DNA of 64,000 bases, taken from the IMG/VR virus record IMGVR_UViG_3300028920_000001, positions 310,001 through 374,000 of that record. The stretch is one strand, 5' to 3'. The notes below the pieces were generated by a model that saw only the letters and a program-made list of their open reading frames with translations, did not search any database and had not been told where the DNA came from. The translations under genes were made by a program, and so were the position numbers. Of this stretch, positions 2,215-39,771 are shown in pieces (within the stretch, counting starts at the first letter, position 1; every line of letters starts with the position of its first letter).

Positions 2215-2317
2215 CTTTTCCGGGGTCATACTCGTCCTCTAGACGTAAGACGTTAGTTGTACCCCAGATCTGACACCTGAGCATTCTCGAACATGTTTTT
2301 AATGTTCGAGAAATAAT

Positions 2318-2989: not shown

Positions 2990-2997
2990 ATCTAAAT

Positions 2998-4771: not shown

Positions 4772-4772
4772 G

Positions 4773-5120: not shown

Positions 5121-5185
5121 GTGTGTACCTTACCATACAAACATTACATTCGTCAAGTGTTTTTATCACGTGTAATTTCGGAAAG

Positions 5186-13518: not shown

Positions 13519-13533
13519 TACTTAATATGTAAT

Positions 13534-18974: not shown

Positions 18975-18975
18975 C

Positions 18976-20217
18976 ATGGCTCTCCTTTTTGTCAATTCGG
19001 GTATCCCTGCTGGACGCTTGCAGCTCTCTTTATTTAATCTAGAGGGTTATCCGCAAGATGCCTATAACGTAGGATATACTATATTTAAACAAGACGGAAC
19101 TCAAGTATCTGGACGTAATATTCCTGCAGTTAAAGTTGACACTGGAAGATATGAAGCTTCATGGGCTTGTTCTAATGTAGGTGGATGTTACAAAATTAAA
19201 TGGGAATATAAACCGGAATCTGGGCGCTCTGTTGAAATAATTTGTGATGATTTCTTTGTAGTTTCTCCTTCTTTTTATCAAAATTTCTTGGCGGGAGCCG
19301 CTTCTGGTCAGCCTCTTAGTACAACTTGTAAAGCGTTCTATTGTGGTCAGGCTCTCGGCGATGGTGATTTAAGTCTATATCTGAAAGATGCAAATGGATT
19401 TCCTGCTAATGCTTATGCAGTTTTTTGGTCCATAATTGATTGTTGTACTGGTTGTCCTTTAATTCAAAGAACTGAAGCTACTCCTGGAGCTGAAATTGGT
19501 TCGTATTATGCAAATTGGTTTGTTAATTTAACCGGAGGTGAATATAAGGTAAAATGGGAATGGATGGAGGAAGCTGATTCTCCATTAGAATCAGCTTGCA
19601 TGACATTTTCTATAATTTGTAATAATTTATTCAATGTTCTCGGAGAGTGTGTTACATCTGAATCTTTTTGTGTTTCTCCGGATGGATTAGATACCTGTTG
19701 CATAATTAAGAAAATTTATATCCCAGTTTCAAATCCTTGTAGCCCAGTTGGTCCAGGAATACCGGTGGTGCCAGTGACTGATCAATGCTGCCCATTTGAA
19801 ATCCCTCGAGTAGTTCATTTAATTACTCAAGTTTTGCCTGCAGGAGGCGCCTATACTACACAACCTGTTTATGAAATTCCGTCTAGAATTCGTAAAATAA
19901 TGTTCTACGTGACTTATAAGAGAGGAATAGCTGGTGGTTATGCTAATTTCAGATTGATGTGGGGAAATGGAACTGAAGAAATTCAATCTACTATGATTGA
20001 TTTAGATTTTGTGAATATAAATACGGCTAGATCTAGACAAGATGCATTTATGAATGATTTTAAAGGACCTGAACCAATAAATGATAATCAAGTAAATTTT
20101 GCATTTGAAGTTAATGTGCCAGGAGGTTCAACTACAGTCAGATTGCTTGCGTCTGAAGGTGGACAGGTAGGAGCGCCTGGGATAATAAGTATTACCTTAA
20201 CTGCTGCGAGTGATTAG
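18976..20217 (+). CDS. Cys-rich putative virion structural protein with two copies of a neck-protein-like domain
   Basis: Start at MALLFVNSG; two repeats similar to the N-terminus of 41408..42301; about 17 Cys. Confidence 0.65.
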
Positions 20218-23200
20218 TGGCTGTTCAGAATCCCCGTGGTAAAAAACCAGGTGCAACTGGTGCAACCGGGCCTCCTGGTCCGACTGGGCCACAAGGTGTA
20301 ACTGGTTTACAAGGGCCTCCTGGTTCACCAGGTGCTACAGGACCACAGGGATCACCAGGTGCTACAGGACCACAGGGATCACCGGGTGTCACAGGTCCAC
20401 AAGGTGTTACTGGTGTAATTGGTCCACAAGGTGCCACTGGACCACAAGGTATTCAGGGATCGCCTGGTCCTGCAGGTCCACAAGGTATTCAGGGATCGCC
20501 TGGTCCTGCAGGTCCACAAGGACCCACTGGATCAATTGGTCCACAAGGTGTTACTGGTTCCCTTGGCCCCACTGGTCCACAAGGATCACAGGGTTCCCCG
20601 GGTGTTACTGGATTACAAGGTGTTCAGGGTTCCCCTGGCCCCACGGGTCTACAAGGATCACAGGGTTCCCCTGGCCCCACGGGTCCACAAGGTTCTACTG
20701 GTCCACAAGGTTCTACAGGTCCCCAGGGTCCTACTGGTGCCACTGGTCCACAGGGTGCCACTGGTCCACAGGGTTCCACTGGTCCACAGGGTGCAACTGG
20801 TTTACAAGGACCAACTGGTGTTACTGGACCACAAGGCTCACCAGGCACTACTGGACCACAAGGTTCCCCTGGACCACAAGGTTCCCCTGGACCACAAGGT
20901 GCTACAGGAATTCAAGGACCAACTGGACCACAAGGCGTAACAGGACCACAAGGAATTCAAGGTACTCCTGGCCCTCGAGGCGCTACTGGTTTACCTGGTC
21001 CTCCAGGATTGCAAGGTAATCAAGGTTCACCGGGTGTTACTGGACCACAAGGAATTCAGGGATCGCCTGGTGTTACTGGATCAACTGGTCCTACTGGTCC
21101 CCAAGGTGCCACTGGTCCCCAAGGTACACAGGGAGTAACTGGTCCTCAGGGAGTAACTGGTTCTACAGGCCCTACTGGTCCCCAAGGTGCAACAGGACCA
21201 CAGGGAATTCAGGGTGCCACTGGTTTACAGGGTGCCACTGGTTTACAGGGTCCTAATGGTGTCACAGGAGCTACTGGTCCCCAAGGTGCAACTGGTCCCC
21301 AAGGTGCCACAGGTGTTACGGGTCCTACTGGACCACAAGGGGCAACAGGACCACAAGGGGCAACAGGACCACAAGGGGCAACAGGACCACAAGGAATTCA
21401 GGGTACCACTGGCCCAACTGGACCACAGGGTGCAACTGGTCCCCAAGGTGCCACTGGACCACAGGGTGCAACAGGACCGCAGGGTATAACTGGCCCAACT
21501 GGTCCTCAAGGTAGTCCAGGTGTTACTGGACCACAAGGTATTCAGGGTCCTACGGGTCCCCAAGGTCCTACGGGTCCCCAAGGTTCTACGGGTCCCCAAG
21601 GTCCTACGGGTTTAAAAGGTGATCAAGGCAGTCCAGGTATAACTGGTGCGACAGGCCCTACCGGACCCCAGGGCGAAACAGGTGTACAAGGCACCCCTGG
21701 GTCAACTGGTCCCCAAGGCGTTACTGGTTTACAGGGTGCAACTGGTGCAACTGGGCCTCAAGGTTCGCCTGGTGTTACTGGCCCCCAGGGTGCAACTGGT
21801 GTTCAAGGTCCTACAGGTGTTCAAGGTCCTACAGGCCCTACTGGACCACAAGGCGTAACAGGACCACAAGGAATTCAAGGTACTCCTGGCCCTCGAGGCG
21901 CTACTGGTTTACCTGGTCCTCCAGGATTGCAGGGCCCACAAGGTAGTCCAGGCATAACTGGTGCACTTGGTCCTACGGGTCCTATTGGTACTACAGGTCC
22001 ACAAGGCGCTACGGGTCCACAGGGTGCTACAGGATTACAAGGCGCTACAGGATTACAAGGACCAACAGGCGCTACAGGTCCCCAGGGTGCAACTGGTCCC
22101 CAGGGTGCAACTGGTCCACAAGGTGCTACAGGATTACAAGGACCAACAGGTCCCCAGGGTGCAACTGGACCACAAGGCGTTACAGGTCCCCAAGGTGCAA
22201 CTGGTTTACCAGGCGCAACTGGTTTACCAGGCGCAACTGGATCAACTGGACCACAAGGCGTTACAGGTCCCCAAGGTGCAACAGGATTACAAGGACCAAC
22301 AGGTGCTACAGGACCAACAGGTGCTACAGGACCACAAGGCGCTACAGGTCCCCAAGGTAGTCCAGGTGTTACTGGCTCACAGGGTATTCAAGGACTAACA
22401 GGTGCTATTGGTCCCACTGGACCACAAGGATTACAGGGTAGTCCAGGTGTTACTGGGGTTACGGGTCCACAGGGTGATCAAGGCTCACCTGGTGTTACTG
22501 GTCCACAAGGATCACCGGGTGTCACAGGTCCTACGGGTTCACAAGGTGATCAGGGCTCTCCGGGTGTTACTGGTCCTACAGGTCCCCAAGGTGATCAGGG
22601 TTCTCCAGGTGTCACAGGCCCTCAAGGATCACCGGGTGTTACAGGTTCTATAGGTTCACAGGGATCACCTGGAGTCACAGGTCCCCAAGGTGATCAGGGC
22701 TCCCCAGGTGTCACAGGAGCTACAGGTCCCCAGGGATCACCAGGTGTTACCGGTCCGACTGGACCCACTGGACCGCAGGGTGATCAAGGCTCTCCGGGTA
22801 TTACCGGCTTTACTGGTCCACAGGGTGATCAAGGCTCCCCAGGTGTCACAGGTCCTACAGGCCCCCAAGGTGATCAAGGATCACCAGGTCCTACAGGCCC
22901 CCAAGGATCACCGGGTGTTACAGGTCCAACCGGACCGCAGGGTTCCCCCGGAATCACAGGTCCCCAAGGTTCTCCCGGAATCACAGGTCCCACAGGCCCT
23001 CAAGGTGATCAAGGCTCACCTGGTGTTACAGGAGCCATAGGCCCTCAAGGCTTCCCGGGTGTTACCGGTCCTACAGGTCCACAGGGTGTTACCGGTCCTA
23101 CAGGCCCCCAGGGCTCACCTGGTGTCACAGGATCACAAGGTGATCAAGGATCACCTGGAGTTACCGGTCCTACAGGTTCCCGGGGCGCCACCGGTACTCA

Positions 23201-26200
23201 GGGTGATCAAGGGTCACCTGGTGTCACAGGCCCTACAGGCCCTCAGGGTGTCACCGGTACTCAGGGTGATCAAGGATCACCTGGTGTCACAGGCCCTCAA
23301 GGATCACCTGGTGTCACAGGCCCTACAGGTCCAACAGGTCCCCAAGGTGTCACAGGCCCTACAGGCCCTCAGGGTGATCAGGGATCACCTGGAATTACGG
23401 GCACTATTGGTCCAACAGGTCCCCAGGGTGAGACAGGTGTTCAAGGAATTCAAGGAAGTCCTGGAGTAACAGGTGCTACAGGTCCTGCTGGATCTGCTAC
23501 TGGAGTCACCGGTCCCCAGGGGCCACAGGGGAGTCCAGGTGTCACAGGTTCTATAGGTCCACAAGGCAGCCCTGGTGTCACAGGTTCCCAGGGCGCTACA
23601 GGCCCACAAGGTTTCACCGGTCCCCAGGGGTCACCTGGTGCTACAGGCCCACAAGGTGTCACAGGCCCTCAGGGTGATCAGGGCTCACCTGGTGTCACCG
23701 GTCCAGTAGGGGCTACTGGATCCCAAGGTGCTCAAGGCTCACCTGGAGTTACAGGATTTACTGGGCCACAAGGCTCACCTGGAGTCACAGGTCCCCAAGG
23801 CTCACCTGGTGTCACTGGTTCTACAGGCCCCCAAGGTGTTCAAGGTTCACCAGGTGTCACGGGTCCACAAGGTTCACCTGGAGTCACAGGTCCCCAAGGT
23901 GTCACTGGTCCTATAGGTTCAACAGGTCCCCAAGGTGTTACAGGATCTACAGGTCCCCAAGGTCCCCAAGGCTCACCTGGAGTCACAGGTCCAACAGGCC
24001 CTCAAGGCGTCACAGGTCCACAGGGTGTTACCGGTTTTATAGGCCCTCAAGGCTCACCAGGTGTAACGGGTCCAACAGGTCCCCAAGGCGATCAGGGTTC
24101 TCCAGGTGTTACAGGGGCTACTGGACCTCAAGGTCCTACAGGCCCCCTGGGTGTCACAGGTCCAACAGGTCCCCAAGGCGATCAGGGAAGTCCTGGAATT
24201 ACTGGTGCGACAGGGGCTACTGGTCCTACAGGTCCCCAAGGTGTTACTGGACCACAGGGTGATCAGGGTTCACCAGGTGTCACAGGTCCACAAGGTGTCA
24301 CAGGTCCTACAGGCCCACAGGGTTCACCTGGAGTCACCGGTCCCATAGGTCCAACAGGTCTAACAGGTCCAACAGGTCCACAAGGGGTTACTGGTTCTAC
24401 AGGCCCTCAAGGCGAAACAGGGGTTACTGGTTCTACAGGCCCCCAAGGTGATCAAGGATCCCCGGGTGTTACAGGTCCTACTGGACCCCAAGGAGTCCAG
24501 GGATCACCAGGTGTTACAGGGGTAACTGGACCCCAAGCATCACCTGGTGTCACTGGTCCAGTAGGGGCTACTGGATCCCAAGGTGCTCAAGGCTCACCTG
24601 GAGTTACAGGATTTACTGGGCCACAAGGCTCACCTGGAGTCACAGGTCTTACAGGCCCCCAAGGTGCTCAAGGATCACCTGGAGTCACAGGCTCTACAGG
24701 TCCCCAAGGTGTTACTGGCCCACAGGGATCACCAGGTGTTACCGGGGCTACAGGCCCCCAAGGTGTCACAGGTCTTACAGGCCCCCAGGGCTCACCGGGT
24801 GTCACAGGCCCCCAAGGCTCACCGGGTGTCACAGGCCCCCAAGGCTCACCGGGTGTCACAGGCCCCCAAGGTGCTCAAGGCTCACCGGGTGTCACAGGTC
24901 CTACAGGTCCTGTTGGTCCACAGGGTGTTACTGGTTTTACTGGACCGCAGGGTGATCAGGGCAGTCCAGGTTTCACTGGTCCACAAGGTGATCAGGGCTC
25001 ACCTGGAGTTACAGGTCCTACAGGCCCCCAAGGTGTCACAGGCCCCCAAGGATCACCGGGTGTCACAGGTCCACCGGGTGTCACAGGTCCTATTGGACCG
25101 CAAGGTGATCAAGGCTCACCGGGTGTCACAGGTCCACAGGGTGATCAAGGCTCCCCGGGTGTTACAGGAGCTATAGGTGTCACCGGTCCACAAGGCGATC
25201 AGGGTTCACCTGGAGTCACAGGCCCTCAAGGTGTCACTGGTCCACAAGGTGATCAAGGCTCCCCAGGTGTTACAGGTGTTACAGGGGCTACAGGTCCACA
25301 AGGTGATCAGGGCTCACCTGGAGTCACAGGCCCCCAAGGTGTCACAGGTCCTACGGGTCCCCAAGGTGTTACCGGTTTCACAGGTTCTAAAGGTGATCAG
25401 GGTTCACCTGGAGTCACAGGTCCCCAAGGTGATCAGGGTTCACCTGGAGTCACCGGTTCTACGGGCCCTGTTGGCTTACAGGGTTCTCCAGGTGTTACAG
25501 GAGCTACAGGTCCACAAGGTGATCAGGGAAGTCCTGGTGTCACAGGTCCCCAAGGATCACCTGGTGTCACAGGCCCTACAGGCCCACAGGGTGTTCAGGG
25601 TTCACCAGGTGTCACAGGTTCTACAGGTCCACAAGGTGATCAAGGATCACCTGGAGTCACAGGAGCTTTAGGTCCAACAGGCCCCCAGGGTGATCAAGGC
25701 TCACCCGGAGTCACAGGCCCCCAAGGTGTCACAGGTCCTACGGGTCCCCAAGGTGTTACCGGTCCCCAAGGTGATCAAGGCTCCCCAGGTGTCACAGGAG
25801 CTATAGGCCCCCAAGGTGTTACCGGGGCTACAGGTCCTACGGGTCCCCAAGGTGATCAGGGATCACCTGGAATTACAGGCCCCCAAGGTGCTCAAGGATC
25901 ACCTGGAATTACAGGCCCCACAGGTCCTGTTGGCCCACAAGGCTCACCGGGTGTCACAGGAGCCACAGGTCCCCAAGGTTCTACAGGTCCACAGGGTTCA
26001 CCTGGAGTTACCGGTTCTACGGGTCCACAGGGTGATCAAGGCTCACCGGGTGTCACCGGTCTTACAGGCCCCCAAGGCTCACCGGGTGTCACCGGCCCCC
26101 AGGGTGTCACAGGTCCTACAGGTCCACAGGGTTCACCTGGAGTCACAGGTGCTACAGGACCACAAGGCGCTACAGGATTACAAGGATCAACAGGTTCTAC

Positions 26201-27434
26201 GGGTCCACAGGGTGATCAAGGATCACCTGGAGTCACAGGAGCTTTAGGTCCAACAGGCCCCCAGGGTGATCAAGGCTCCCCGGGTGTCACAGGAGCTACA
26301 GGCCCCCAAGGATCACCTGGTGTCACCGGTCCTACAGGCCCACAGGGTGTCACAGGTCCTATTGGACCGCAAGGTGATCAAGGCTCACCGGGTGTCACAG
26401 GTCCACAGGGTGATCAAGGGTCACCCGGAATTACGGGTGTCACAGGCCCTCAGGGTGATCAAGGCTCCCCGGGTGTCACAGGCCCCCAGGGTGTCACAGG
26501 TTCTATAGGTCCAACAGGTTCTATTGGACCGCAAGGTGATCAAGGCTCCCCAGGTGTCACAGGCCCCCAAGGTGTCACAGGCCCCCAAGGTGTCACAGGC
26601 CCCCAAGGTGTCACAGGTCCTACAGGCCCCCAGGGTGATCAGGGCTCACCAGGTGTCACCGGTCCTACAGGTCCCCAGGGTGATCAAGGATCACCGGGTG
26701 TTACAGGCCCCCAAGGTGATCAAGGATCACCAGGTCCTACAGGTCCACAGGGTGATCAAGGCTCTCCTGGTATTACAGGCCCCCAGGGTGATCAAGGCTC
26801 TCCTGGTATCACAGGAGCTACAGGTCCCCAAGGCGTCACAGGTCCCCAGGGTGATCAAGGCTCTCCTGGTGTCACAGGATCTACAGGCCCCCAGGGCTCT
26901 CCTGGTGTCACAGGCCCCCAAGGAGTCACAGGTCCTACGGGTCCCCAAGGTCCACAAGGTAGTCCTGGTGTAACTGGAGTTACTGGTTTTATTGGTCCTC
27001 AAGGATCGCCTGGAGTTACTGGTGCTACAGGTCCAGCTGGTGCTAGTACTGATTGGTTTAATTCTATTACAAGTAATACAACTATAACTTCAACTTCATT
27101 CGTTACTTTGTTATCTGTGAATATTACTAAAGCTACTTCTGGTTCGGTTCTTAAAATTTATGGAGTTGTTAATGGTGTTATTTCTTCTGCTCAGCAACAG
27201 ACAGAAGTTAGATTAAGAATTGATTCTACGACTTATATGGGTGGATCTCTTGATCAAGCTGCCAATACGAATGCAGCTTGTTGTTCATTTGTATACAGAG
27301 CAACTGGAATTTCGTCAGGAGCTCATACTGTAGAAATTCAAGTTAGATCAATTCAGCCTAGTCAATCAATTTATGTTAGACCTTCTACTTATCCTAATCG
27401 TGAGAGTGCTACACTGCTTGTTGAGGAGATTTAA
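20217..27434 (+). CDS. Giant collagen-like fibre protein (2405 aa)
   Basis: Gly-X-Y from residue 12 to about 2277 (about 755 triplets), Thr/Gln/Pro-rich, plus about 130-aa beta-rich C-terminal domain. Confidence 0.95.
20922..21931 (+). repeat. Exact ~92-bp direct repeat within the collagen gene (20922-21013 and 21840-21931)
   Basis: Identical DNA encoding [30 protein letters not shown], offset 918 bp (102 triplets). Confidence 0.85.
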
Positions 27435-27437
27435 TAG

Positions 27438-29783: not shown

Positions 29784-29817
29784 TGAAAGTTCTTTCTAGT
29801 CTCTTGAAGGAGAAATC

Positions 29818-30441: not shown

Positions 30442-30452
30442 TACTCTGAATA

Positions 30453-31814
30453 ATGCCCAGCTATGACAACAGTTCCTCGACCACAGCTGGTGGTGGAGGG
30501 ACTAGTTATTCTGCTAATCATACGATTGCAGCGCAAGGAAACGGCCGCATTCTCATTGCGGTGTTTTTTGCGATGGCTGGGTCGAACGCTGCCACCAAGT
30601 TCACGTCGGTGCAGTACGATGGGACTGCACCGACGGGACAACTTACTCCTGATGTAGAACACGATCGATATGGAAACTATGGGAGTATCTCAGTTTACTA
30701 TTGGCTGGAATCAGATCTACCAGCCAATGGATCGCCGACTGCTTACAATATCACGGCGACGAGTGCTACTGGTCAGTGGAATGGGCATCTAGCAGCCATC
30801 TCGTTGACGGCGGCTGCCCAGACGGCCCCTACAGCCACAGGGAGGAACGAGGCCGAGAATGCAACTTCAAGCTCGGTAAGCATCACGACCACGGACACCA
30901 ATTCAATGATTGTGGATGCTGTTGCTGTCGTAGCAAGCGACATGTCGGGAGGTGTGTCACCAACAGCAGGCCAAACCGAAGTCCAAGACATTACTGCTGC
31001 TACCGCTTATAGGTTGGGTCTCGGTTACGAAGCGGTCACGACGGCCCAAGCTTACTCTCAAACTTGGTCGTGGAGCCCCACTTGCATGTTCGACATGGAG
31101 TTTGCCGTTGCGGTAGCTCCAGGTGGTGGTGTCAACATAGAAATAGGAAACCTCGCCCAGGGTAACGCTGGTTCCAGTGTAAGCCATACTCTGACAACGA
31201 GTGCCAATCGCATCGCCATCGTCTTGATCGATGACGAATCCACCAGTCAAGCCTCAGGTGTTACCTACAACAGTGTGGCAATGACCCGGGTGGCGTACTC
31301 GACTGCGACGGCAGGTGCGGGCAACGCATCCTCTATGTGGGTAATCCTTGATGCAGATTTACCTGCTGGAGGCACTAGCTACAACGTCGTGGTCTCGGGA
31401 TTGGACTCGGGTGCGTCGGTAACTGTTGTCGAGATCAACAATGTGGCACAGGTCATTCCTACAGGGTCTCAAGTGGATACGACCGAGTCTGGTGATGTTT
31501 CTAGCTCGTCCACGACAGTCACCGCACCGGATGGTAACTCGATCTCTGTAGGAGCGCTTGGGTACGGAAACGACACAGCGACTTTCAACAGTCCGAGTGG
31601 GACGGGAACTTGGACCCGGCTGTTCACGATTTATGGTCCGCCCAGCAGTGCCTGGTATGGAGGTGCTTACCAGGCATGGACAACAGGAGGATCTAAGACA
31701 TATACCGAGAGCGTAGATACTACGTTCTTTCGAGCTTCGCATATTCAAGCGGTATTTGCAGCTTATGCTGTTGTTACGACTTATAATGCCCCATTTTTCG
31801 GGACCAATTTTTGA
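30453..31814 (+). CDS. Putative fibre/adhesion protein with duplicated beta-sandwich module
   Basis: Two repeats: SANHTI...GRILIAV...VQYDG... and SVSHTL...NRIAIVL...VTYNS...; S/T/A/G-rich. Confidence 0.7.
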   Translation: MPSYDNSSSTTAGGGGTSYSANHTIAAQGNGRILIAVFFAMAGSNAATKFTSVQYDGTAPTGQLTPDVEHDRYGNYGSISVYYWLESDLPANGSPTAYNITATSATGQWNGHLAAISLTAAAQTAPTATGRNEAENATSSSVSITTTDTNSMIVDAVAVVASDMSGGVSPTAGQTEVQDITAATAYRLGLGYEAVTTAQAYSQTWSWSPTCMFDMEFAVAVAPGGGVNIEIGNLAQGNAGSSVSHTLTTSANRIAIVLIDDESTSQASGVTYNSVAMTRVAYSTATAGAGNASSMWVILDADLPAGGTSYNVVVSGLDSGASVTVVEINNVAQVIPTGSQVDTTESGDVSSSSTTVTAPDGNSISVGALGYGNDTATFNSPSGTGTWTRLFTIYGPPSSAWYGGAYQAWTTGGSKTYTESVDTTFFRASHIQAVFAAYAVVTTYNAPFFGTNF

Positions 31815-31877
31815 AGCATTTATCTGAATTGATAATGCTTATAAATTAACTCAATTTTTTAGCGGTAACGTTAGGCT

Positions 31878-34289
31878 ATGAATCAGGTTGCTCCAATATC
31901 TGTCTGTCTAATTACTAAAAATGAAGCTGGTCAAATTGAAAATTGTTTAAAATCTATCCGTCCGTATGTGGCTGAAATTTGTGTAGTTGATACTGGATCC
32001 TCAGATAATACTCCTGAAATTTGTAAAAAATACGCAGATAAACTTGAAACGTATACTGAATGTAATGATTCTCAGGGCCGAATAATATCATTTTCTAAGG
32101 CTCGAAATCGAAGTTTTGAATTAGCCAGTCAGCCTTGGGCTATGTGGGTTGATGGGGATGATGAGGTTCAAGGTGCTGAAAATTTATATAACGTAATTCA
32201 AAATCTTGATCATCTTTCTCGTCCCATTCTCATTTTGTTTCAATATGAATATTCTCATGACGATAAAGGAAATGTTACTTGTTTACATTGGAGAGAGCGA
32301 TTAGTTCAGCCTAAAGAACAATTTGAATGGGTAAATCCTGTTCATGAAGTATTGAATCCTAAAATACCGAATACTATTCATATTAGATCTGAAGCTGTTA
32401 GAATTATCCATCGACGAGATTTATCAGGTAAAATAATTGAACCAGGTCGCAATCTTCGAATTTTGAAAAAGCACTACGCAAATGTTGGGGAATCCGATGT
32501 TCGTAGTTTATATTATTTAGGATTAGAATATGGGAATAATGGTGATATTGAAAGTGCTTTAAAATTTCATAAGCGATATATTGAATTATCTGGTTGGGAT
32601 GATGAAAGATTTCAAGCATGTTTAAAAATCGTTGAACATTATCAGACTTCTGGTAGATATGAAGAAGCTATTGAATGGGCGCTTAAATCATTAACTATTA
32701 GAGAGGGATGGGCTGAGTCTTATTTTGCTTTAGCTAGGAACTATTATTTCTTGGCTCAACGGAATGATGCTAATTCGCGTCGTAATTGGGAAAGGTGTAT
32801 TTATTTTTCTAAATTAGGATTAGATTTTCCTCCGACTGAAACTATTTTATTTGTTAATCCGACTGAAAGAGACTTTGAGATCCATAAATATTTAAATGTA
32901 GCGTATAATAATGTTGGAAGGGTTGAAGACGCACTTGATAGTGTAAATACTGCACTTCAAATTAAAGGAGATCCAGGATTAGAACACAATAAACGATTAT
33001 ATGAACTTCATTTAGCTCGAGTGAGAATTAACACTGAATTAGACGTTCTTAATCGATATGAAAATGATGGAGGAATTTCTGTTAAAGCAAAGCATATTAT
33101 TGATTCAATATTGGACGGGAAGTTTTTGGTATCCCAGGAATTGGAACAAACTAAATCAGATAAGCTAGATATTGTTTTTTATGTTGGGAGTAGTATTGAG
33201 TCTTGGAATCCAAAAACAATAAAGAAAAATGGAATAGGAGGATCTGAGACAGCGGTTTGGGAAATGGGTCGTCGTTTTACTAAGATGGGTCATAGAGTTC
33301 GTGTATTCGGTGATTGTCCTGGACGGCTTGAAGGAGTCTTTGAGGATGTTGAATTTCTATATTATGATAAATGTAGGGATTTAACTTGTGATGTTTTTAT
33401 AACTTCTCGTCAGCCTCATATTGTTGATGATGGATTTAACATTAAATCTAAAATTAAATTATGCTGGGTCCATGACATTCATTGTGGATCTGGATTAAAT
33501 CATGAGCGGGCTTTGAAAATTGACAAGTTTTTATGTTTAAGTAAATGGCATAAGGATTTCTTCTTAGCTCAATATCCATATATACATCCTGATCAAGTTA
33601 TTGTAACTAGAAATGGTATTGATTTAAGTCGATTTGAATCAAATGATTCAATTATTAGAAATCCGCATAAGGGAGTTTATAGTAGTAGTCCTGATCGTGG
33701 ATTAGAGATTGCTATCAAATCTATGCCGAAGATTCGAGAACGAGTTCCAGATGCAGAACTTCATATATATTATGGATTTAAGAATTGGGAGATTTCTGCT
33801 AAATTAGCAAATAGTAAAGATCAAATGGAACTTATTCAATACTTGAAGATTTTGATTGAAGAACATGAAGAACATGGTGTAGTATTCCATGATCGATTAG
33901 ATCAAGATACACTAGCTAAGGAATTCGTGAGTGCAGGTGTGTGGATGTATCCAACTTGGTTTTCTGAGACATCGTGCATTACTGCAATGGAAGCTCAGGC
34001 AGCAGGTCTTCATATAGTTACTTCTCCAATTGCAGCATTGAATGAAACGGTCGGTGATCGCGGAACAATGATCGAGGGAGATTGGCTTTCTCCTGAATAT
34101 ATGGAAAAGTTTGTTAATGCTGTAGAATTTCACATGAATCGTTCAGGAGATGATGAGAGGAAGTCACTTCAGCAGTATGCTCGAGGGCATTTTGGATGGG
34201 ATTCTCTAGTAAATGATTGGGTTAAAATGTTTGAAAGTATAGTTGAAGAAGTGATGGAAAATATTGTTCCTGCGTTTAAATCGGTGTAA
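31878..34289 (+). CDS. Glycosyltransferase fusion: GT2 + TPR + GT4-like
   Basis: ISVCLITKNEA...VVDTGSSDNT...FSKARN...WVDGDD...VHE; TPR helices; GGSETAV, SSSPDRGL, ETSCITAMEAQAAG. Confidence 0.9.
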   Translation: MNQVAPISVCLITKNEAGQIENCLKSIRPYVAEICVVDTGSSDNTPEICKKYADKLETYTECNDSQGRIISFSKARNRSFELASQPWAMWVDGDDEVQGAENLYNVIQNLDHLSRPILILFQYEYSHDDKGNVTCLHWRERLVQPKEQFEWVNPVHEVLNPKIPNTIHIRSEAVRIIHRRDLSGKIIEPGRNLRILKKHYANVGESDVRSLYYLGLEYGNNGDIESALKFHKRYIELSGWDDERFQACLKIVEHYQTSGRYEEAIEWALKSLTIREGWAESYFALARNYYFLAQRNDANSRRNWERCIYFSKLGLDFPPTETILFVNPTERDFEIHKYLNVAYNNVGRVEDALDSVNTALQIKGDPGLEHNKRLYELHLARVRINTELDVLNRYENDGGISVKAKHIIDSILDGKFLVSQELEQTKSDKLDIVFYVGSSIESWNPKTIKKNGIGGSETAVWEMGRRFTKMGHRVRVFGDCPGRLEGVFEDVEFLYYDKCRDLTCDVFITSRQPHIVDDGFNIKSKIKLCWVHDIHCGSGLNHERALKIDKFLCLSKWHKDFFLAQYPYIHPDQVIVTRNGIDLSRFESNDSIIRNPHKGVYSSSPDRGLEIAIKSMPKIRERVPDAELHIYYGFKNWEISAKLANSKDQMELIQYLKILIEEHEEHGVVFHDRLDQDTLAKEFVSAGVWMYPTWFSETSCITAMEAQAAGLHIVTSPIAALNETVGDRGTMIEGDWLSPEYMEKFVNAVEFHMNRSGDDERKSLQQYARGHFGWDSLVNDWVKMFESIVEEVMENIVPAFKSV

Positions 34290-34291
34290 AT

Positions 34292-34957
34292 ATGCTTGGT
34301 TTATTATCATTTAAGGGCAAAGAGTTCAGATATGAATTCATACCAGGAAATATTCCTACTGGTCAGAACCCATCTTGGTATTCATTTGTAGATGAACAAT
34401 CAGTACGCGACAGATGGTGGAATATCGAAGAAGGTGATGTTATCTTTGATGTTGGATGTGCATATGGTTCTTACACCTTGCCGGCTTTAGTATTAGGAGC
34501 CAGTCACTGTTATTGTTGGAACCCCCTTGATTCAGAAATGTCTATTTTAGCTCAATCTTTAAAGCATAATGGGTGGGAAGATAAAGCTACTTTATTTATG
34601 GCTGGGCTATATAATAAGATTGGATTTCTTAACCCAGATACTCAAGAATTTTCTCAAGAATACAAAGATGGAATGTTTGCTGTTACGACTTTAGATCAAT
34701 ATTTAGAAGATCAGAAAATTAAATTAAGTAACTCTAAATGTTGGATGAAAATGGATGTTGAAGGAGCTGAATTAGAAATTCTTAAAGGAGGAACGAAATT
34801 ATTAAATCAATTTAGACCAAATATTATAATAGAAAATCATGTATTTAAGATTGCTGATATTCAGACACAGGTTCAGTCTTTTCTGGAATCATTGAATTTT
34901 AAACATGTAGAAACTGTTCCTTATCATGCTGTATCTCATTCTTTGTATATTCCATGA
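34292..34957 (+). CDS. FkbM-family SAM methyltransferase
   Basis: IFDVGCAYGSYT; VTTLDQY; MKMDVEGAELEILKGG. Confidence 0.9.
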   Translation: MLGLLSFKGKEFRYEFIPGNIPTGQNPSWYSFVDEQSVRDRWWNIEEGDVIFDVGCAYGSYTLPALVLGASHCYCWNPLDSEMSILAQSLKHNGWEDKATLFMAGLYNKIGFLNPDTQEFSQEYKDGMFAVTTLDQYLEDQKIKLSNSKCWMKMDVEGAELEILKGGTKLLNQFRPNIIIENHVFKIADIQTQVQSFLESLNFKHVETVPYHAVSHSLYIP

Positions 34958-36102
34958 AAATATTATTTGTTTTTGCCCCTTATTTGTTTTTGAGGGGTCT
35001 TTTTGACCATGGTAAAAAATATGATTTTGTAAATTTAAGGGACAATCCTAGAGGATTAACAGGTTCTGAAGTCTCTTGTTTCCAAATTGCTAAGCAATTT
35101 GCTCTAAAGGATCATGATGTTGCAATATCTACTACATTGAATTCAAATAGAATAAATATCTGGGAAAATGTCAATATTATACCTATGGATAATGTAGATG
35201 ACATTAAGAAAATTGTGAATGGTGATTGGGATGTTGTTTATTCTTGGAATGAAGTCAATGTTTTAAGATATGTAAATCCGAATTCACTTAGGATGATAAA
35301 TCTTCAAATTAATGACTTGGATCATGGTGAAGATGGATATGATGATTATGTAGATATATATACTAGTCCATCTGAATCTCACAAGTCTGTTATCGGCAAA
35401 TTAGCTCCTAATCTTAGCAAATGGGAAGTTGTGCCAAATGGATGTTATTTGGATATATATGACAAATTAAATCAAAACATAATAGATGGGAGAATAATTT
35501 ATGCATCTTCTCCAGATAGGGGTCTTCATTGGTTACTTCAAATATGGCCTTCAATTCGTAAGGCAGTTCCAGAAGCTCATTTAAAAATTTTTTATGAGAT
35601 TCAATCTTGGATAAATCGATTTAATGATATAGATCCAATATCGGTAACTAAAATAATGGCTCAACTTTCATGTCGAGCACGTTATATTAAAGAGGCTTTT
35701 AGAAGATTTGGATCAAATTCTGGAATTGAAGTTATTGGTTCTGTCAGTCGGAATCAGATTGCTAAAGAATTTGCTCAAGCTCAAATTTTAGCTTATCCTT
35801 GCGATACTGTTAGTTATACTGAAGGATTTTCAGTTACTTTGATGGAAGCGTGTGCTTCTAAAACTGTTCCAATCACTACTGATGTGGATGCTCTTGGAGA
35901 GATTTATGGATCTGCAGTTCCCATGGTGCATGCACCAATTGAGCCCAATTTGGATGAATATCGGGAGTTGGTAATTAGAGCGCTTACTGATTATAATTTT
36001 CGTCAGGAAGTGATCTCTAAAGCTAGGCAATTAGCAGAGCAGTATACCTGGGATAAGGTTGCTGATAAGGTGTTAGATATCATAGAAAAGAGACGAAAAT
36101 GA
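34954..36102 (+). CDS. GT4-like glycosyltransferase
   Basis: GLTGSE; YASSPDRGL; EGFSVTLMEACA; YTWDKVA. Confidence 0.9.
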   Translation: MKILFVFAPYLFLRGLFDHGKKYDFVNLRDNPRGLTGSEVSCFQIAKQFALKDHDVAISTTLNSNRINIWENVNIIPMDNVDDIKKIVNGDWDVVYSWNEVNVLRYVNPNSLRMINLQINDLDHGEDGYDDYVDIYTSPSESHKSVIGKLAPNLSKWEVVPNGCYLDIYDKLNQNIIDGRIIYASSPDRGLHWLLQIWPSIRKAVPEAHLKIFYEIQSWINRFNDIDPISVTKIMAQLSCRARYIKEAFRRFGSNSGIEVIGSVSRNQIAKEFAQAQILAYPCDTVSYTEGFSVTLMEACASKTVPITTDVDALGEIYGSAVPMVHAPIEPNLDEYRELVIRALTDYNFRQEVISKARQLAEQYTWDKVADKVLDIIEKRRK

Positions 36103-36566
36103 ATCATGATGAATATACAACAGCTGTGGATCAGGGTAAATGGCCATCCGATTCATTAGTTCCTTTAGATGATCCTTTCATTAATGAAAATGGGGTTATT
36201 CAGAATCTTCTTCTTAAGCCTGCAAATAGTTTTACTATCATTCATAGTAAACCATCTAGTATTCGTGCCAATCACTACCATAAGACTGATTGGCATTATT
36301 CATATGTAGTGAGTGGAAGAATTATTTATTTTGAGCGCAAAGTTGGCGATACTATTGTTCCAGAACCACAGTTTTATGAATCTGGAAAAATGTTTTTTAC
36401 TCCACCGATGGTGGAACATGTTATGTATTTTCCTGAACAAACAACTTTTGTGACTATGGCCAAAAATATACGTTCTCATGAAAGTCATGAATCTGATGTT
36501 GTCAGAGTTTCATTTTTAGATTTGGATCAAATACGAGATTTGTGTTGGAAAGCTTTGAGGAAATAA
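36099..36566 (+). CDS. Cupin-fold NDP-sugar epimerase/isomerase-like protein
   Basis: IRANHYHKTDWHYSYVVSG...FTPPMVEH. Confidence 0.8.
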   Translation: MNHDEYTTAVDQGKWPSDSLVPLDDPFINENGVIQNLLLKPANSFTIIHSKPSSIRANHYHKTDWHYSYVVSGRIIYFERKVGDTIVPEPQFYESGKMFFTPPMVEHVMYFPEQTTFVTMAKNIRSHESHESDVVRVSFLDLDQIRDLCWKALRK

Positions 36567-36567
36567 T

Positions 36568-37878
36568 ATGACTCTTCAAAGGATTCGGAAAGACTGTAGG
36601 CTGTGTGGAAGTGAAGAGCTTGAGAAAACTTTTGATTTAGAGGATTCTCCTCCAGCAAATGAATTTGTTACAGAATCAGAAATAGACAAGTCTCAGGAGA
36701 AGTTTCCACTCGGATTATGGGAATGTCAAAATTGTGGTCATGTTCAGTTACCTGTAGTAGTAAGCCCTGATCAGCTATTTCGTAATTATGTTTATGTATC
36801 TGGTACTAGCCCAGTTTTTGTAGATCATTTTCGTAAGTATGCCGAATCTTTAACTAATCGGGCCAATTTTCGAAAAGGAGACTGGGTAATTGATATTGGA
36901 AGTAATGATGGTACTCTTCTTAAATTTTTTAAAGAGAAGGGCGCTCGAGTTTTAGGTGTTGATCCGGCTAGAGATATTGCAGCTAAGGCAACAGTAGAAG
37001 GTATTGAAACTATTCCGGAATTTTTTACTAGTGAACTGGCTCAGAAAATTAGTGAAGAGCGAGATATTAGGACAACTAAGGCTAATGGAGCTAGATTCAT
37101 AACAGCGAATAATGTGTTTGCCCATGCTGATGATTTAGGTGATATTGTTAATGGAGTAAAGAAATTACTTGATACTAATGGGATATTTGTTTTTGAGGTT
37201 TCTTATTTAGTTGATGTGATAGAGAAGAATTTATTTGATACCATTTATCATGAGCATTTATCTTATCATCACTTAGGACCACTTATTAAATTTATGTTAT
37301 CTTATAATATGATGGTTAGCCATGCCGAGCGTATTGATACTCATGGCGGATCTTTACGGGTTTACTGTACGAGTTTGTTTAGTTCTGCTTTTGGAAAACC
37401 GTCGAGTTTAGTCCAAGAAATTCTTGAACACGAATTTAAGATGAACTTAAAAGGAAGTGGCTTTGATGATGTATTTAATGGATTTATGCCATTACATTCT
37501 TTGAAATCGAAGATTGATTCACTTCGTGATCAATTACTAAATAGATTGAAAGAGATTAAGTCAAGAGGAAAATCTATAGTAGTTTTTGGAGCTCCAGCTA
37601 AAGCCACTACTTTAATGCATCATTTTAAATTGGGTAAAGAAACCATTGATTTTGTGGTGGACGACTCTCCACTTAAACAGGGGTTATTTACTCCTGGAAC
37701 TCATATTCCTGTGGTATCGTCAAGTACCTTGTATGAAAAGAAGCCAGACTATTGTGTGATTTTGGCTTGGAATTTTGCAGAGCCAATTATGAAAAATCAT
37801 CAGGCTTATTTAGAACAAGGTGGAAAATTTATTGTACCAATACCAGAGTTAAAAGAATATGGAACTCCTAAAAACTGA
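36568..37878 (+). CDS. NDP-hexose C-methyltransferase (Zn-binding N-terminus, SAM domain, C-terminal domain)
   Basis: CRLCG...PPANEF...CQNCGHVQL; IDIGSNDGTLL; NNVFAH; FDTIYHEHLSY; HGGSLR; GAPAKATT; ILAWNFAEPI. Confidence 0.9.
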   Translation: MTLQRIRKDCRLCGSEELEKTFDLEDSPPANEFVTESEIDKSQEKFPLGLWECQNCGHVQLPVVVSPDQLFRNYVYVSGTSPVFVDHFRKYAESLTNRANFRKGDWVIDIGSNDGTLLKFFKEKGARVLGVDPARDIAAKATVEGIETIPEFFTSELAQKISEERDIRTTKANGARFITANNVFAHADDLGDIVNGVKKLLDTNGIFVFEVSYLVDVIEKNLFDTIYHEHLSYHHLGPLIKFMLSYNMMVSHAERIDTHGGSLRVYCTSLFSSAFGKPSSLVQEILEHEFKMNLKGSGFDDVFNGFMPLHSLKSKIDSLRDQLLNRLKEIKSRGKSIVVFGAPAKATTLMHHFKLGKETIDFVVDDSPLKQGLFTPGTHIPVVSSSTLYEKKPDYCVILAWNFAEPIMKNHQAYLEQGGKFIVPIPELKEYGTPKN

Positions 37879-38905
37879 TATTGATGAAATTGCCACTAGT
37901 TTAAACAGTTTGAGAGATGTTTTCGACGGAAAACGAATTCTCATTACTGGTGGATGTGGATTTTTAGGTCGATATTTTATCGAGACCTTTGTTTTTCTTA
38001 ATAAACACTTTCTTCGGAATCCCTGTGAATTAATTGTTTTAGATAACTTCATTACTTCTGGTGATAAGGGTGAATTACCAGAAACTAAGAACATTGCATT
38101 TATTGAACATGATATAATTAAGCCATTTTATCCAGAAAGACCGGTAGATTTCATTTTGCATGCAGCTGGAATAGCTAGCCCATTTTATTATCGTAAATAT
38201 CCATTAGAAACATTAGCAGTTGCTACTACTGGACTTCAGAATACGCTTGAACTTGCCCAAAAAAGTCCTGGATCAAGGTTACTTTTCTTTAGTTCGAGTG
38301 AGATTTATGGAGATCCAGATTCGAAATGTGTTCCTACTCAAGAAAGTTATCGTGGCAATGTGAGTTGTATCGGACCTCGCGCATGTTATGATGAATCGAA
38401 ACGATTGGGGGAGACTTTAATTGATATTTTTCATCAACAATATGGGGTTCATGCTACTGTAGTACGTCCATTTAATGTATACGGCCCGGGAATGTTGAAA
38501 ACTGATTATCGAGTGTTACCTAATTTTGGAGCTCGAATAAAAGAGGGTAAGCCGCTTCAAATTTATGGAACTGGAGATCAAACCAGAACTTTTTGTTATA
38601 TAACTGATGCTATTCGCGGGTTTTTACAAGTACTGGTTAGTGGTGTACCGGGGGAGCCTTACAATATTGGCAATCCAAGTCCTGAAATTTCCATGATTGA
38701 TTTGGCTTATGAGATTGGAAAGACTTTAGGAAAAGAAGTTAAATTTGATATAGTTGAATATCCTGATTCTTACCCAGCGGATGAACCTAATCGACGTTGT
38801 CCTGATATTACCAAAGCAGCACGTCAAGTTGGGTATGAGCCTTCCATACCTTTGCAAATGGGCTTGAAGAGATTCTTTGATTGGGTTGAAGAGGCATATA
38901 AGTGA
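37859..38905 (+). CDS. UDP-glucuronate decarboxylase-like extended SDR
   Basis: ITGGCGFLG; HAAGIASP; SSSEIYGD; GPRACYDESKR; RPFNVYGP; QTRTFCY. Confidence 0.85.
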   Translation: MELLKTDIDEIATSLNSLRDVFDGKRILITGGCGFLGRYFIETFVFLNKHFLRNPCELIVLDNFITSGDKGELPETKNIAFIEHDIIKPFYPERPVDFILHAAGIASPFYYRKYPLETLAVATTGLQNTLELAQKSPGSRLLFFSSSEIYGDPDSKCVPTQESYRGNVSCIGPRACYDESKRLGETLIDIFHQQYGVHATVVRPFNVYGPGMLKTDYRVLPNFGARIKEGKPLQIYGTGDQTRTFCYITDAIRGFLQVLVSGVPGEPYNIGNPSPEISMIDLAYEIGKTLGKEVKFDIVEYPDSYPADEPNRRCPDITKAARQVGYEPSIPLQMGLKRFFDWVEEAYK

Positions 38906-39771
38906 GATTCACTCTTGTAGGTTGTGGCGCTTGGGGAAAAAATTACTTAAAAACTGTTAAAACTATTCCAGGTATAGAAATTTCTAATGTAATTAAGCGA
39001 AGCATTCTTTCTGAAGATGCACGTACATTAATGTCGAAATATGGATTAACAATTTCAACTCCAGATGCTTTAGATTATATTAATCCAACTGGAGTTATAA
39101 TTGCTACTCCCCCACAGACACATAAAGATATGGTTATTCCACTTTTACAAAGGAAAATCCCCGTTTTATTGGAAAAACCTGTTGCTCATACTTATGGTGA
39201 TGCAAAAGAAATTTTTGAAGCTGCTAAGGCTACCGGAACCCTTTTGTTAGTGAATAATATTCATTTATTTGCTGACGCGTTTTTGAGTTTAAAAGATAGC
39301 TTAGTTCATCGACCCATCCATATTGTTTCTTGTGGAGGAAATCAGGGTCCATTTCGTGATTATTCTTCATTGTTAGATTACGCTCCTCATGATTTAGCAA
39401 TGTGTTTGTCATTGTTTGATGGGCAAAATCCAGATCAAGTAGAGATAAATAAAATAAACAGACCCAGAGGTGAGACTTATACTATTGCTTTAAAATTTGG
39501 TGATAGTTCTGCTGAGCTTGTGGTTGGGAATGGCATGACTGGAAAGCGTCGATATTTTGAAGTAACACAAGGTAGAAATAAGATTGTTTATGATGATTTG
39601 GCTTATTCAAAATTAATCGTAAATGGCATAGGTACGATGAAAACTCAAGAACCTCCATTAACTCGAGTGATTCAAACATTTGCGAAATCTATTATTGATA
39701 ACAATCGTGATTGGAGGTTTGACTATGAATTAAATCTGAGAATTATGAAGATTATTCAACAAGGACTATGA
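38902..39771 (+). CDS. Gfo/Idh/MocA family oxidoreductase
   Basis: VGCGAWG; IATPPQTH; VLLEKP; DYAPHDL. Confidence 0.9.
   Translation: MRFTLVGCGAWGKNYLKTVKTIPGIEISNVIKRSILSEDARTLMSKYGLTISTPDALDYINPTGVIIATPPQTHKDMVIPLLQRKIPVLLEKPVAHTYGDAKEIFEAAKATGTLLLVNNIHLFADAFLSLKDSLVHRPIHIVSCGGNQGPFRDYSSLLDYAPHDLAMCLSLFDGQNPDQVEINKINRPRGETYTIALKFGDSSAELVVGNGMTGKRRYFEVTQGRNKIVYDDLAYSKLIVNGIGTMKTQEPPLTRVIQTFAKSIIDNNRDWRFDYELNLRIMKIIQQGL

Follow-up and report, generated by a model that had tools for sequence, protein, structure and literature searches.

A giant threonine-rich collagen-like fibre and a linked sugar cassette that may glycosylate it in a clade of huge phages

The stretch of DNA analysed here, referred to as the window, comprises 64,000 nucleotides (positions 310001-374000) of the 426,960 bp IMG/VR contig IMGVR_UViG_3300028920_000001 and reads as part of a divergent tailed phage; a megablast search of GenBank phages with 40 kb of its sequence returned no match. 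The window carries a module of 12 late genes in which two collagen-like fibre genes and their neighbours are followed by seven sugar genes, the first of them coding for a three-module glycosyltransferase (GT). We consider it fairly likely that this cassette glycosylates the threonines of the larger, giant collagen fibre. The genes of the module and the features that border it are as follows, with Pfam, NCBIfam and Protein Data Bank (PDB) matches given as E-values.

18886-39771, plus strand: fibre module of 12 co-directional late genes, with intergenic gaps of -20 to +63 nt
18886-20217, plus strand: upstream partner gene with a listed length of 443 aa; translation perhaps starts later (overlap with 18570-18974)
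20217-27434, plus strand: giant collagen-like fibre protein, 2405 aa, with a translation free of internal stops
27048-27431, plus strand: C-terminal head of the giant collagen, 128 aa, predicted to adopt a TNF/C1q-like jelly-roll fold
27438-29783, plus strand: second collagen-like fibre, 781 aa; Pfam Collagen PF01391 (9.5e-32)
29818-30441, plus strand: 207-aa protein encoded downstream of the fibres and ahead of the sugar genes; without a match in Pfam, PHROG or NCBIfam
30453-31814, plus strand: 453-aa protein rich in Ala, Thr, Ser and Gly; no Pfam, PHROG or NCBIfam match and no transmembrane segment
31878-34289, plus strand: three-module glycosyltransferase, 803 aa; GT2 (GT-A fold, residues 8-200), TPR-like (200-330) and GT4 (GT-B fold, 450-790)
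34292-34957, plus strand: FkbM-family methyltransferase, 221 aa; PF05050 (5.7e-13) and TIGR01444 (3.5e-14, above the NCBIfam cut-off)
34954-36102, plus strand: stand-alone GT4/GT1 glycosyltransferase, 382 aa; PF00534 (1.3e-12) and PF13692 (3.5e-10)
36099-36566, plus strand: small metal-type cupin, 155 aa; weak single-sequence match to Pfam Cupin_2
36568-37878, plus strand: nucleotide-sugar C-methyltransferase of the TylC3/TcaB9/MtmC type, 436 aa; PF08421 (zinc, 9.5e-19), PF13489 (4.3e-12) and PF08484 (2.3e-48)
37859-38905, plus strand: short-chain dehydrogenase/reductase (SDR) resembling UDP-glucuronate decarboxylase (UXS), 348 aa; human UXS1 (3.6e-63, 217 bits)
38902-39771, plus strand: Gfo/Idh/MocA NAD(P) oxidoreductase, 289 aa; PF01408 (7.6e-18) and PDB 3c1a (2.8e-26)
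40287-40937, convergent with the module: ligase-like gene directly after the last sugar gene (38902-39771)
41408-42301, plus strand: clade core gene with a confident N-terminal immunoglobulin (Ig)-like sandwich, which is also found in 18886-20217
46348-47673, plus strand: clade core gene, core in a large huge-phage clade

An earlier, sequence-only reading of this DNA had named most of these open reading frames (ORFs), among them the two collagens rich in Gly-X-Thr, and all lie where it had placed them, on the plus strand; its seven tightly packed sugar genes (31878-39771) could each be given an enzyme class by family searches. Its module boundaries (20217-39771) hold at the downstream end but move by one gene at the other, to 18886, because the GTG that starts the giant collagen gene overlaps the TAG that ends 18886-20217 (TAGTG), an overlap that also suggests translational coupling of the two genes. 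The sugar cassette is flanked by fibre genes on one side and further late genes on the other, all on the same strand, and its GT genes are thereby embedded among structural genes in the manner described for mycobacteriophages. Background GC content in the window is 33-44% and rises to 55-59% in the collagen genes because of their Gly, Pro, Thr and Ala codons.

The giant collagen consists of 11 N-terminal residues, 754 G-X-Y triplets (nt 20250-27047) and the 128-aa head (nt 27048-27431). The triplets account for 94% of the protein and form three runs of 361, 115 and 278 with two small breaks between them, long uninterrupted Gly-X-Y repeats that are characteristic of collagen-like proteins of the PF01391 class. 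At the DNA level, the region is a degenerate tandem array whose periods are multiples of 9. An in-frame TGA at 20211-20213, upstream of the collagen GTG, excludes a longer N-terminus. Fusion of 18886-20217 with the collagen by read-through or frameshifting was considered and rejected, given this TGA one codon before the GTG and the lack of a slippery site. Computed at the textbook rise of 0.286 nm per residue for the collagen triple helix, the fibre would be ~648 nm long if the helix were continuous.

The composition of the triplets is unusual. Threonine occupies the Y position in 317 of them (42%), followed by Gln (37%) and Pro (16%), while X is mostly Pro (36%), Ser (19%), Val (19%) or Ala (10%). 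Only 2.3% of the residues in the collagen region are charged, and the 754 triplets include two KGD and no KGE, compared with KGD in 13% of the triplets of viral collagens generally (PMC11923368). No prolyl hydroxylase was found among the window ORFs of at least 100 aa. The peptide (Gly-Pro-Thr)10 does not fold unless its Thr is galactosylated (PMC11923368), and the near absence of charge and of KGD/KGE clamps makes helix stabilisation by Thr glycans pertinent to the giant collagen (PMC11923368).

For the C-terminal head, an AlphaFold2 model based on a 33-sequence alignment is all beta and confident (predicted local distance difference test, pLDDT, 94.6), and predicts a jelly roll of the TNF/C1q fold straight after the last triplet. 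Foldseek against the PDB matched it to the C-terminal domain of Pgp3, the trimeric TNF-like lectins PLTL and BC2L-C, C1QL3, 4-1BBL, the phi812 spike knob and the CBD of a cyanophage short tail fibre; for the TNF-like lectins, Pgp3, C1QL3 and 4-1BBL, E-values ranged from 1.5e-5 to 6e-4, with template modelling (TM) scores of up to 0.74. In BFVD, the matches were tail fibre, minor tail and host-specificity proteins as well as GXT collagen-like proteins of cedratviruses. Sequence searches placed the head in neither the BclA C-terminal nor the C1q Pfam family, and the likeness to these is one of fold and architecture only: the C-terminal 145 aa hit no Pfam family at E up to 0.01 and had no PDB sequence match, and PHROG and NCBIfam returned nothing useful. 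Relatives of the head form a family of ~200 representative clusters; the proteins concerned are 124-2660 aa long and mostly carry the domain at their very C-terminal end. A collagen stalk with a predicted C-terminal head of this kind is the layout of BclA and C1q, in which such heads act as folding nucleus and distal tip. Judged by its model, the head is therefore a probable trimerisation nucleus and a distal, possibly glycan-binding tip; collagen folding runs from the C- to the N-terminus (PMC11923368). The 445 kb relative L017 offers a variation, in that its 2358-aa collagen (1-3111) stops ~15 residues past the last triplet; a beta-rich ORF of 110 aa comes next and looks as though it might encode the head separately.

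The upstream partner 18886-20217 matches no family, but the stretch of residues 148-247 is similar to the N-terminal Ig-like domain encoded by the core gene 41408-42301, at 30-34% identity and also by fold comparison, and we regard it as a candidate anchor or assembly partner for the giant collagen. A gap of 3 nt separates the giant collagen gene from that of the second fibre, whose product is made up of an N-domain of 124 aa that is kept in seven related loci, 70 contiguous triplets (~60 nm; Thr at 54% of Y positions) and a C-terminal part of 447 aa. Its non-collagen part matches the PHROG tail-fibre, tail and virion-protein families phrog_819 (residues 194-655), phrog_3904 (694-777) and phrog_19200 (663-779). 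The next two ORFs, previously described as accessory fibre genes, are real; the fibre label itself derives from their position only, as neither matches any family. Weak homologs of both the 207-aa protein (32% identity, upstream of the core gene) and the 453-aa protein (28%) occur in L151/L152, loci that have neither collagen nor transferase, and none of the related transferase-bearing loci contains a homolog of either protein or of the head domain.

The first sugar gene had been read as a GT2-TPR glycosyltransferase. Both modules are present (PF00535, 6e-17, residues 8-179; TPR_1 and related families, residues 209-295), but an additional GT4/GT1 match makes the protein a GT2-TPR-GT4 fusion. 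The best PDB matches of the GT2 part are GmaR (2.4e-15, residues 7-202), the flagellin O-GlcNAc transferase of Listeria, and SunS, a peptide S-glycosyltransferase. Across 20 homologs, D38 and the DXD motif (D92-x-D94-D95) are invariant, and the EX7E motif (E697-x7-E705) of the GT4 part is retained, with E705 nearly invariant; both catalytic modules hence look intact. An N-terminal GT2 domain with DXD followed by TPR repeats is the build of GmaR and of SgtA from Clostridioides difficile, a 358-aa enzyme (GT-A domain 1-260, four TPR 262-358) that adjoins bclA3 and attaches beta-O-GlcNAc to Thr in the GPT repeats of BclA3 (PMC7157674). The phage protein has no predicted transmembrane segment and should be soluble. 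We propose that it combines in one chain the enzyme that starts O-glycosylation of the target protein and the transferase that performs the first elongation.

Searches recovered 722 homologs of the transferase at E <= 1e-5, many on contigs of 300-445 kb, and tblastn against GenBank phages found nothing above 31% identity. When residues 1-310 were used alone, the phage relatives were followed by hundreds of stand-alone homologs, 353-365 aa in length, that come from Clostridia and Paenibacillus (30-33% identity over ~90% of the query). Against one of these, the 358-aa clostridial GT2-TPR protein P0331, identity is 32% over 296 aa (E = 4e-41), and the alignment spans both the GT-A and the TPR part. 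Two of the six contexts sampled for these stand-alone enzymes, those of P0331 and P0371 (Lachnospiraceae and related), place the gene 25 nt downstream of a PF01391 gene in a BclA-like layout, so that the phage transferase has cellular homologs adjoining collagen-like genes. A 2455-aa neighbour of a GT2-TPR homolog in Clostridium (L227) was also considered as a collagen and turned out not to be one. Within bacterial genomes, the only close relatives of the full transferase lie on two short phage-like contigs from metagenome-assembled genomes (MAGs; L104 and L105), and more distant cellular GT2-TPR-GT4 proteins are not beside collagen, except in one weak case (L111).

Several observations on the wider transferase family stand by themselves. 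In L111, a Solirubrobacterales MAG, a 250-aa ORF at 13356-14108 on the minus strand contains 37 consecutive Gly-X-Thr triplets and lies ~2 kb from a distant (26%) GT2-TPR-GT4-like gene. The 10.8 kb contig L104 (DATBQC010000445.1), binned as Methylobacter sp., holds a full cassette with a downstream collagen, and three Polyangiales MAG contigs (P0440, P0461 and P0488) carry homologs 66-67% identical to the UXS-like enzyme; these bins are weak hints at a host or donor, or mis-binned phage DNA. Transferase homologs of other huge phages contain inteins (LAGLIDADG_3, Hint_2, Intein_splicing; P0023, P0056, P0065, P0068 and P0093) or a class-I S-adenosylmethionine (SAM) methyltransferase inserted between the GT2 and GT4 halves (P0035, P0041, P0104 and L020 10001-13456), the latter giving proteins of 1100-1200 aa.

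Downstream of the transferase, the sugar genes vary in how widely they are kept. The stand-alone GT4, proposed from its family to elongate the glycan, is present in all 27 surveyed cassettes, and the FkbM gene, a putative O-methyltransferase of the glycan, in 13 of the 27. The cupin is retained in 24 loci, always directly upstream of the C-methyltransferase, with H59, H61, H66 and H107 invariant; its profile matches the CapF cupin (C3-epimerase) domain (4.2e-4) as well as metal cupins, and we propose an epimerase or isomerase acting next to the keto group of a nucleotide sugar. The C-methyltransferase combines the four-Cys zinc domain, the SAM-binding domain and Methyltransf_14 at full length and aligns end to end with MtmC (4rv9; 9.5e-78, residues 8-427) and TcaB9 (1.1e-56). 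The genes of the formerly proposed branched-sugar operon are nevertheless a variable accessory, the C-methyltransferase being found in 18 of the 27 cassettes. A UXS-like or other SDR is present in 25. From these last two counts, we take collagen and transferase to be the constant core and the sugar pathway to be variable.

The SDR bears on which pathway is plausible. It is closer to characterised UXS than to 4,6-dehydratases or epimerases: the next class scores at most 114 bits, dTDP-glucose 4,6-dehydratases reach 4e-21 or weaker, and relatives with 65-73% identity carry the JGI name UDP-glucuronate decarboxylase. No gene beside the C-methyltransferase has a 4,6-dehydratase-like best match. 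A UDP-glucuronate-based route is accordingly favoured over the classical dTDP-6-deoxyhexose route, and the SDR is proposed as the source of a UDP-4-keto-pentose; on a UDP-glucuronate-based route, the branched sugar may be a pentose. For the Gfo/Idh/MocA enzyme, which also shows a weak match, far below the cut-off, to an archaeal UDP-GlcNAc 3-dehydrogenase, we propose the role of final ketoreductase or, alternatively, of sugar dehydrogenase. Neither a nucleotidyltransferase nor a UDP-glucose dehydrogenase was found among the window ORFs of at least 100 aa. All seven sugar enzymes appear soluble, with no 19-residue window reaching a Kyte-Doolittle value of 1.6, and no Pfam family of an initiating phosphoglycosyltransferase, a flippase or ABC exporter, or a polymerase occurs among the 12 module genes; in this the locus is unlike an undecaprenyl phosphate-dependent cluster for surface polysaccharide (O-antigen or capsule).

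The expectation that collagen and sugar genes would be found together in related phages was borne out, as the two are linked across many huge-phage contigs and jointly absent from more distant relatives. With the transferase and the C-methyltransferase as queries, we found 13 other viral contigs (12.8-428 kb) that carry the genes in one order, GT2-TPR-GT4, (FkbM), GT4, cupin, C-methyltransferase, SDR and Gfo; eight of them have a Thr-rich collagen immediately upstream, and a ninth has one within the cassette. Two contigs without an upstream collagen have one 12-18 kb downstream on the same strand, which means that the cassette is not tied to one side of the fibre module. We then counted collagen ORFs, defined by at least 20 triplets, around the transferase gene at 79 metagenomic loci, 24 of which extend at least 5 kb upstream and 43 at least 3 kb downstream. 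A same-strand collagen was present upstream in 16 of the 24 and downstream in 1 of the 43, and none was found on the opposite strand; in total, 308 kb of upstream sequence contained 35 collagen ORFs and 354 kb of downstream sequence a single one. The median gap between collagen and transferase is 485 bp, Thr makes up 32-87% of the Y positions, and the linkage persists across a transferase-gene GC content of 27-65%.

Complementarily, we examined relatives that share the flanking core genes. The core genes 41408-42301 and 46348-47673 are found on 103 viral contigs of up to 452 kb at 41-70% identity. Of 50 loci that have the core gene 41408-42301, which served as the clade marker, but not the transferase, 48 also have no collagen at the equivalent position, and the other two are the two rearranged contigs described above, which carry the cassette elsewhere (Fisher p = 1.3e-8, uncorrected for the relatedness of the loci). 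In the relatives L017 and L020, small fibre-associated genes and the same transferase come after collagens of 2358 and 3113 aa, respectively. Their sugar genes differ, with a TylF-like and an FkbM methyltransferase in one and a UDP-glucose 6-dehydrogenase in L020; next come, as in the window, the convergent ligase-like gene and the core gene. The arrangement is recurrent in viral and metagenomic contigs and is not due to chance. With this linkage and the likeness of the transferase to GmaR and SunS, the earlier proposal that the phage's own sugar genes serve its collagen fibres is the best-supported reading, although fibre glycosylation is something that we infer.

We picture the process as follows. 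In the cytoplasm, the GT2 domain would add the first sugar to Y-position threonines of Gly-X-Thr triplets, with 317 candidate sites per chain, while the TPR part would grip the collagen chain; the fused GT4 and the separate GT4 would then lengthen the glycan. Its unusual component would be made from host UDP-glucuronate, which could be decarboxylated to a 4-keto-pentose and C-methylated beside the keto group. The cupin could then epimerise the product and the Gfo enzyme reduce it, and FkbM might supply an O-methyl cap. Three chains would trimerise at the head and zip toward the N-terminus into a triple helix of up to ~0.65 micrometres, stabilised by the glycan in the absence of hydroxyproline and with almost no salt bridges. 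The head would form the distal, possibly sugar-binding tip, and the N-terminal end would be held on the virion through the translationally coupled neighbours. Since relatives retain collagen and first transferase and exchange the sugar genes, swappable sugar genes may diversify the fibre surface. The hairy glycan coat imagined in the sequence-only reading finds no support over a small set of long fibres: the giant fibre's head and the second collagen are similar to tail-fibre tips, which makes such fibres, probably attached to the tail, no less likely than a dense coat. A bolder version, which we consider rather unlikely, would credit the huge-phage clade with the longest known viral collagen fibres (0.65 to ~0.9 micrometres), a helix dependent on dense Thr O-glycosylation, a new C-methyl-branched pentose derived from UDP-glucuronate and sugar genes that act as a swapped 'serotype' cassette.

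Several points weigh against glycosylation of the collagen by the cassette. The phage is uncultured and known from sequence alone, and the linkage counts are not phylogenetically independent. The head-domain family is found mostly on non-collagen proteins, four of the six sampled clostridial homologs are not beside collagen, and the two collagen neighbours that were found are Thr-poor; moreover, the phage transferase was compared with SgtA by size and architecture only, as given in PMC7157674. In other phages, the C-methyltransferase is paired with an unrelated SDR, so its substrate may differ, which makes the pathway the weakest step of the mechanism. Lastly, 6 of the 24 well-covered loci have no collagen within reach, and in the podovirus L023 (MW202524.1, 42.6 kb, Manatee Spring), a full-length homolog with 31% identity (3147-5432) lies right after the major capsid protein gene without any collagen, indicating that the transferase family can serve other targets. 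Mainly on account of this podovirus, but also of the collagen-free loci and of the cassette's occurrence on either side of the fibre module, some weight goes to the view that the cassette glycosylates other virion proteins (capsid, tail tube or other fibres), or virion proteins generally, and that its proximity to collagen merely reflects a shared late structural block. Such a block does not account for a collagen enrichment that is directional and close (35 ORFs upstream against 1 downstream), for the joint absence of collagen and transferase from the same position in 48 related phages, or for the collagen-like genes adjoining homologous cellular enzymes. A search for further conserved structural neighbours of the transferase also came up empty, as the genes for the 207-aa and 453-aa proteins have no homologs in transferase loci, and we hold this explanation to be unlikely.

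The collagens could also be glycosylated without being virion fibres, for instance as a secreted or cell-associated matrix or as an intracellular scaffold during infection. This would fit the 11 residues before the first triplet, which offer no recognisable virion-attachment domain, and the failure of family, PDB-profile and fold searches to assign any flanking core gene to a part of the virion. We find it quite improbable, as the non-collagen part of the second fibre matches tail-fibre and virion-protein families, the head fold is like that of tail-fibre tips and host-specificity proteins, DUF2460-like tail genes follow downstream on the same strand, and neither a signal peptide nor a transmembrane segment is present. 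A role in modifying the host surface (flagellin, pilin, S-layer, lipopolysaccharide or capsule), which would block superinfection or alter the infected cell, is suggested by GmaR, the closest solved GT2 relative and a flagellin-modifying enzyme, and by the well-known serotype conversion by phage glycosyltransferases (PMC12619734 and references there). Seven soluble proteins without flippase, polymerase or initiating phosphoglycosyltransferase, encoded with overlapping stops and starts inside an operon-like array of late fibre genes, make this highly improbable, as does the conserved linkage of the cassette to collagen, which is a gene of the phage itself. Hypermodification of the phage DNA with an unusual sugar as a defence against restriction has precedents in phage DNA glycosyltransferases that decorate DNA with glycans (Pyle et al. 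2024, as cited in PMC12619734), and Mom-family DNA-modification domains do occur in the window. These domains are fused to HNH or other endonucleases and look like mobile insertions, the cassette is linked to collagen and not to nucleotide-metabolism genes, and the GT2-TPR build and its nearest relatives are those of protein and peptide glycosyltransferases; we regard this possibility as extremely unlikely. Glycosylation of the giant collagen by the phage's own cassette is thus the reading that we carry forward.

The ingredients of this reading are already known singly: Thr-rich glycosylated spore collagen, virion glycosylation in mycobacteriophages, sugar pathways in giant viruses and collagen tail fibres. 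One close parallel is formed by the BclA/BclA3 and SgtA systems, which share with the phage locus the short N-terminus, the Gly-X-Thr-rich stalk, a TNF/C1q-like trimeric head (here predicted), the adjacent GT-A plus TPR glycosyltransferase and dedicated rare-sugar genes. The rare sugar of Bacillus anthracis is the methylated anthrose. In contrast to BclA of B. anthracis and C. difficile, however, the phage protein is not encoded by a spore former, has a stalk ~10 times longer (754 triplets) and lacks both an exosporium-targeting N-terminal domain and sequence similarity of the head to the Pfam BclA/C1q families. The transferase is fused to GT4, unlike SgtA, and the sugar genes are UDP-glucuronate-based with a C-methyltransferase.

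Among viruses, mycobacteriophages glycosylate the C-termini of their capsid and tail-tube subunits (Freeman et al. 2023, PMC10527164, as cited in PMC12619734). They have in common with the window phage glycosyltransferases that lie among structural genes and a cytoplasmic modification of virion proteins, known there and inferred here; as far as the description in that citing source extends, the targets are not collagen repeats, and neither a comparable nucleotide-sugar pathway nor a GT2-TPR-GT4 fusion is reported. Megavirinae (Mimivirus and relatives) likewise encode nucleotide-sugar synthesis and transferases, vary their sugar gene sets between clades and bear long glycosylated fibrils (PMC4691112). 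They differ in that their hosts are eukaryotes, the main fibril protein is not collagen, and the pathways yield amino and 6-deoxy sugars, as opposed to a C-methyl sugar derived from UDP-glucuronate. A different enzyme acts on the collagen of Mimivirus, and the residue that it modifies is hydroxylysine. Collagen-like phage tail fibres (the PHROG 'collagen like minor tail' and tail-fibre families; E. coli prophage collagens, PMC3368898) hold their stalk between an attachment and a distal binding domain, a pattern that the second fibre fits. Ordinary phage collagens have segments of tens of triplets and are usually KGD-rich (PMC11923368), whereas the giant fibre has 754 triplets, two of them KGD, and a cassette of its own.

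Precedents for the chemistry come from elsewhere. In Riftia cuticle collagen and in (Gly-Pro-Thr)n, Y-position Thr replaces hydroxyproline and its O-galactosylation stabilises the helix (Mann 1996 and Bann 2000, as cited in PMC11923368), although Riftia collagen is an extracellular animal protein carrying a single galactose, and the stabilising role in the phage would be an extrapolation. The TylC3/TcaB9/MtmC enzymes of actinomycete antibiotic pathways share the full-length C-methyltransferase with its zinc, SAM and C-terminal domains, and need a keto sugar and a later ketoreductase. Their known substrates are dTDP-4-keto-2,6-dideoxy or 3-amino sugars made via a 4,6-dehydratase and a 2,3-dehydratase, whereas the phage partners are a UXS-like SDR, a CapF-like cupin and a Gfo-type oxidoreductase; with this set of partners, the substrate may be a UDP-4-keto-pentose.

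Across the window, genes are densely packed and mostly on one strand; matches to PHROG tail-fibre families and DUF2460-like tail genes occur among them, as do insertions of the HNH and Mom types. We could recognise no capsid or tail-tube gene there, a scan of the window for tRNA genes found none, and a promoter and terminator scan was uninformative. The core gene 41408-42301 had no match in a PDB profile search, and placing the fibres on head or tail by means of it was tried and abandoned, since its AlphaFold model (pLDDT 72.7) gave only generic Ig-like matches. Two plus-strand ORFs (12031-13518 and 42348-43802) combine a Mom-family DNA-modification or acetyltransferase-like domain with an HNH or Vsr-like endonuclease, and a third (17795-18535, plus strand) combines HNH with AP2; all three look like mobile homing elements that break up the late-gene block. 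In a block of uncharacterised late genes, 48942-49934 (plus strand, 330 aa) matches Pfam PF25216 Volactin over its full length (E = 3.5e-73), an actin-fold family whose name comes from volactin of Haloferax volcanii; it has a homolog in the related locus L078 and no PDB sequence match. The 610-aa product of 5123-6955 (plus strand) ends in a PF00912 Transgly domain (peptidoglycan glycosyltransferase, GT51; 2.1e-42), which is unusual for a phage, lytic transglycosylases being more commonly encoded. On the minus strand, 58323-59246 and 60645-61508 code for proteins of ~300 aa each with a C-terminal DnaJ (J-domain) match (6e-8 and 5e-5), which may recruit host Hsp70. In the podovirus L023, further glycosyltransferases and methyltransferases follow the GT2-TPR-GT4 homolog, making it a candidate for capsid glycosylation in a small phage.

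Our literature search found no paper on collagen and glycosylation in huge or jumbo phages, and none that describes, in such a setting, a UXS-like enzyme paired with a C-methyltransferase. That pairing possibly yields a new branched sugar and would add enzymes for glyco-engineering. Whether Thr glycosylation alone can fold and stabilise a triple helix is treated as an open question in collagen biophysics (PMC11923368), and one that bears on recombinant collagen materials. If our reading is true, the fibre gene, its initiating transferase and the small cassette would provide a compact natural system in which to ask this of very long, hydroxyproline-free helices. It would likewise extend virion protein glycosylation beyond mycobacteriophages and giant eukaryotic viruses to a large environmental clade of huge phages, in which it would be conserved and aimed at collagen. 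Sub-micrometre sticky fibres with swappable glycans would then change the picture of how huge phages capture their hosts and of what sets their host range.

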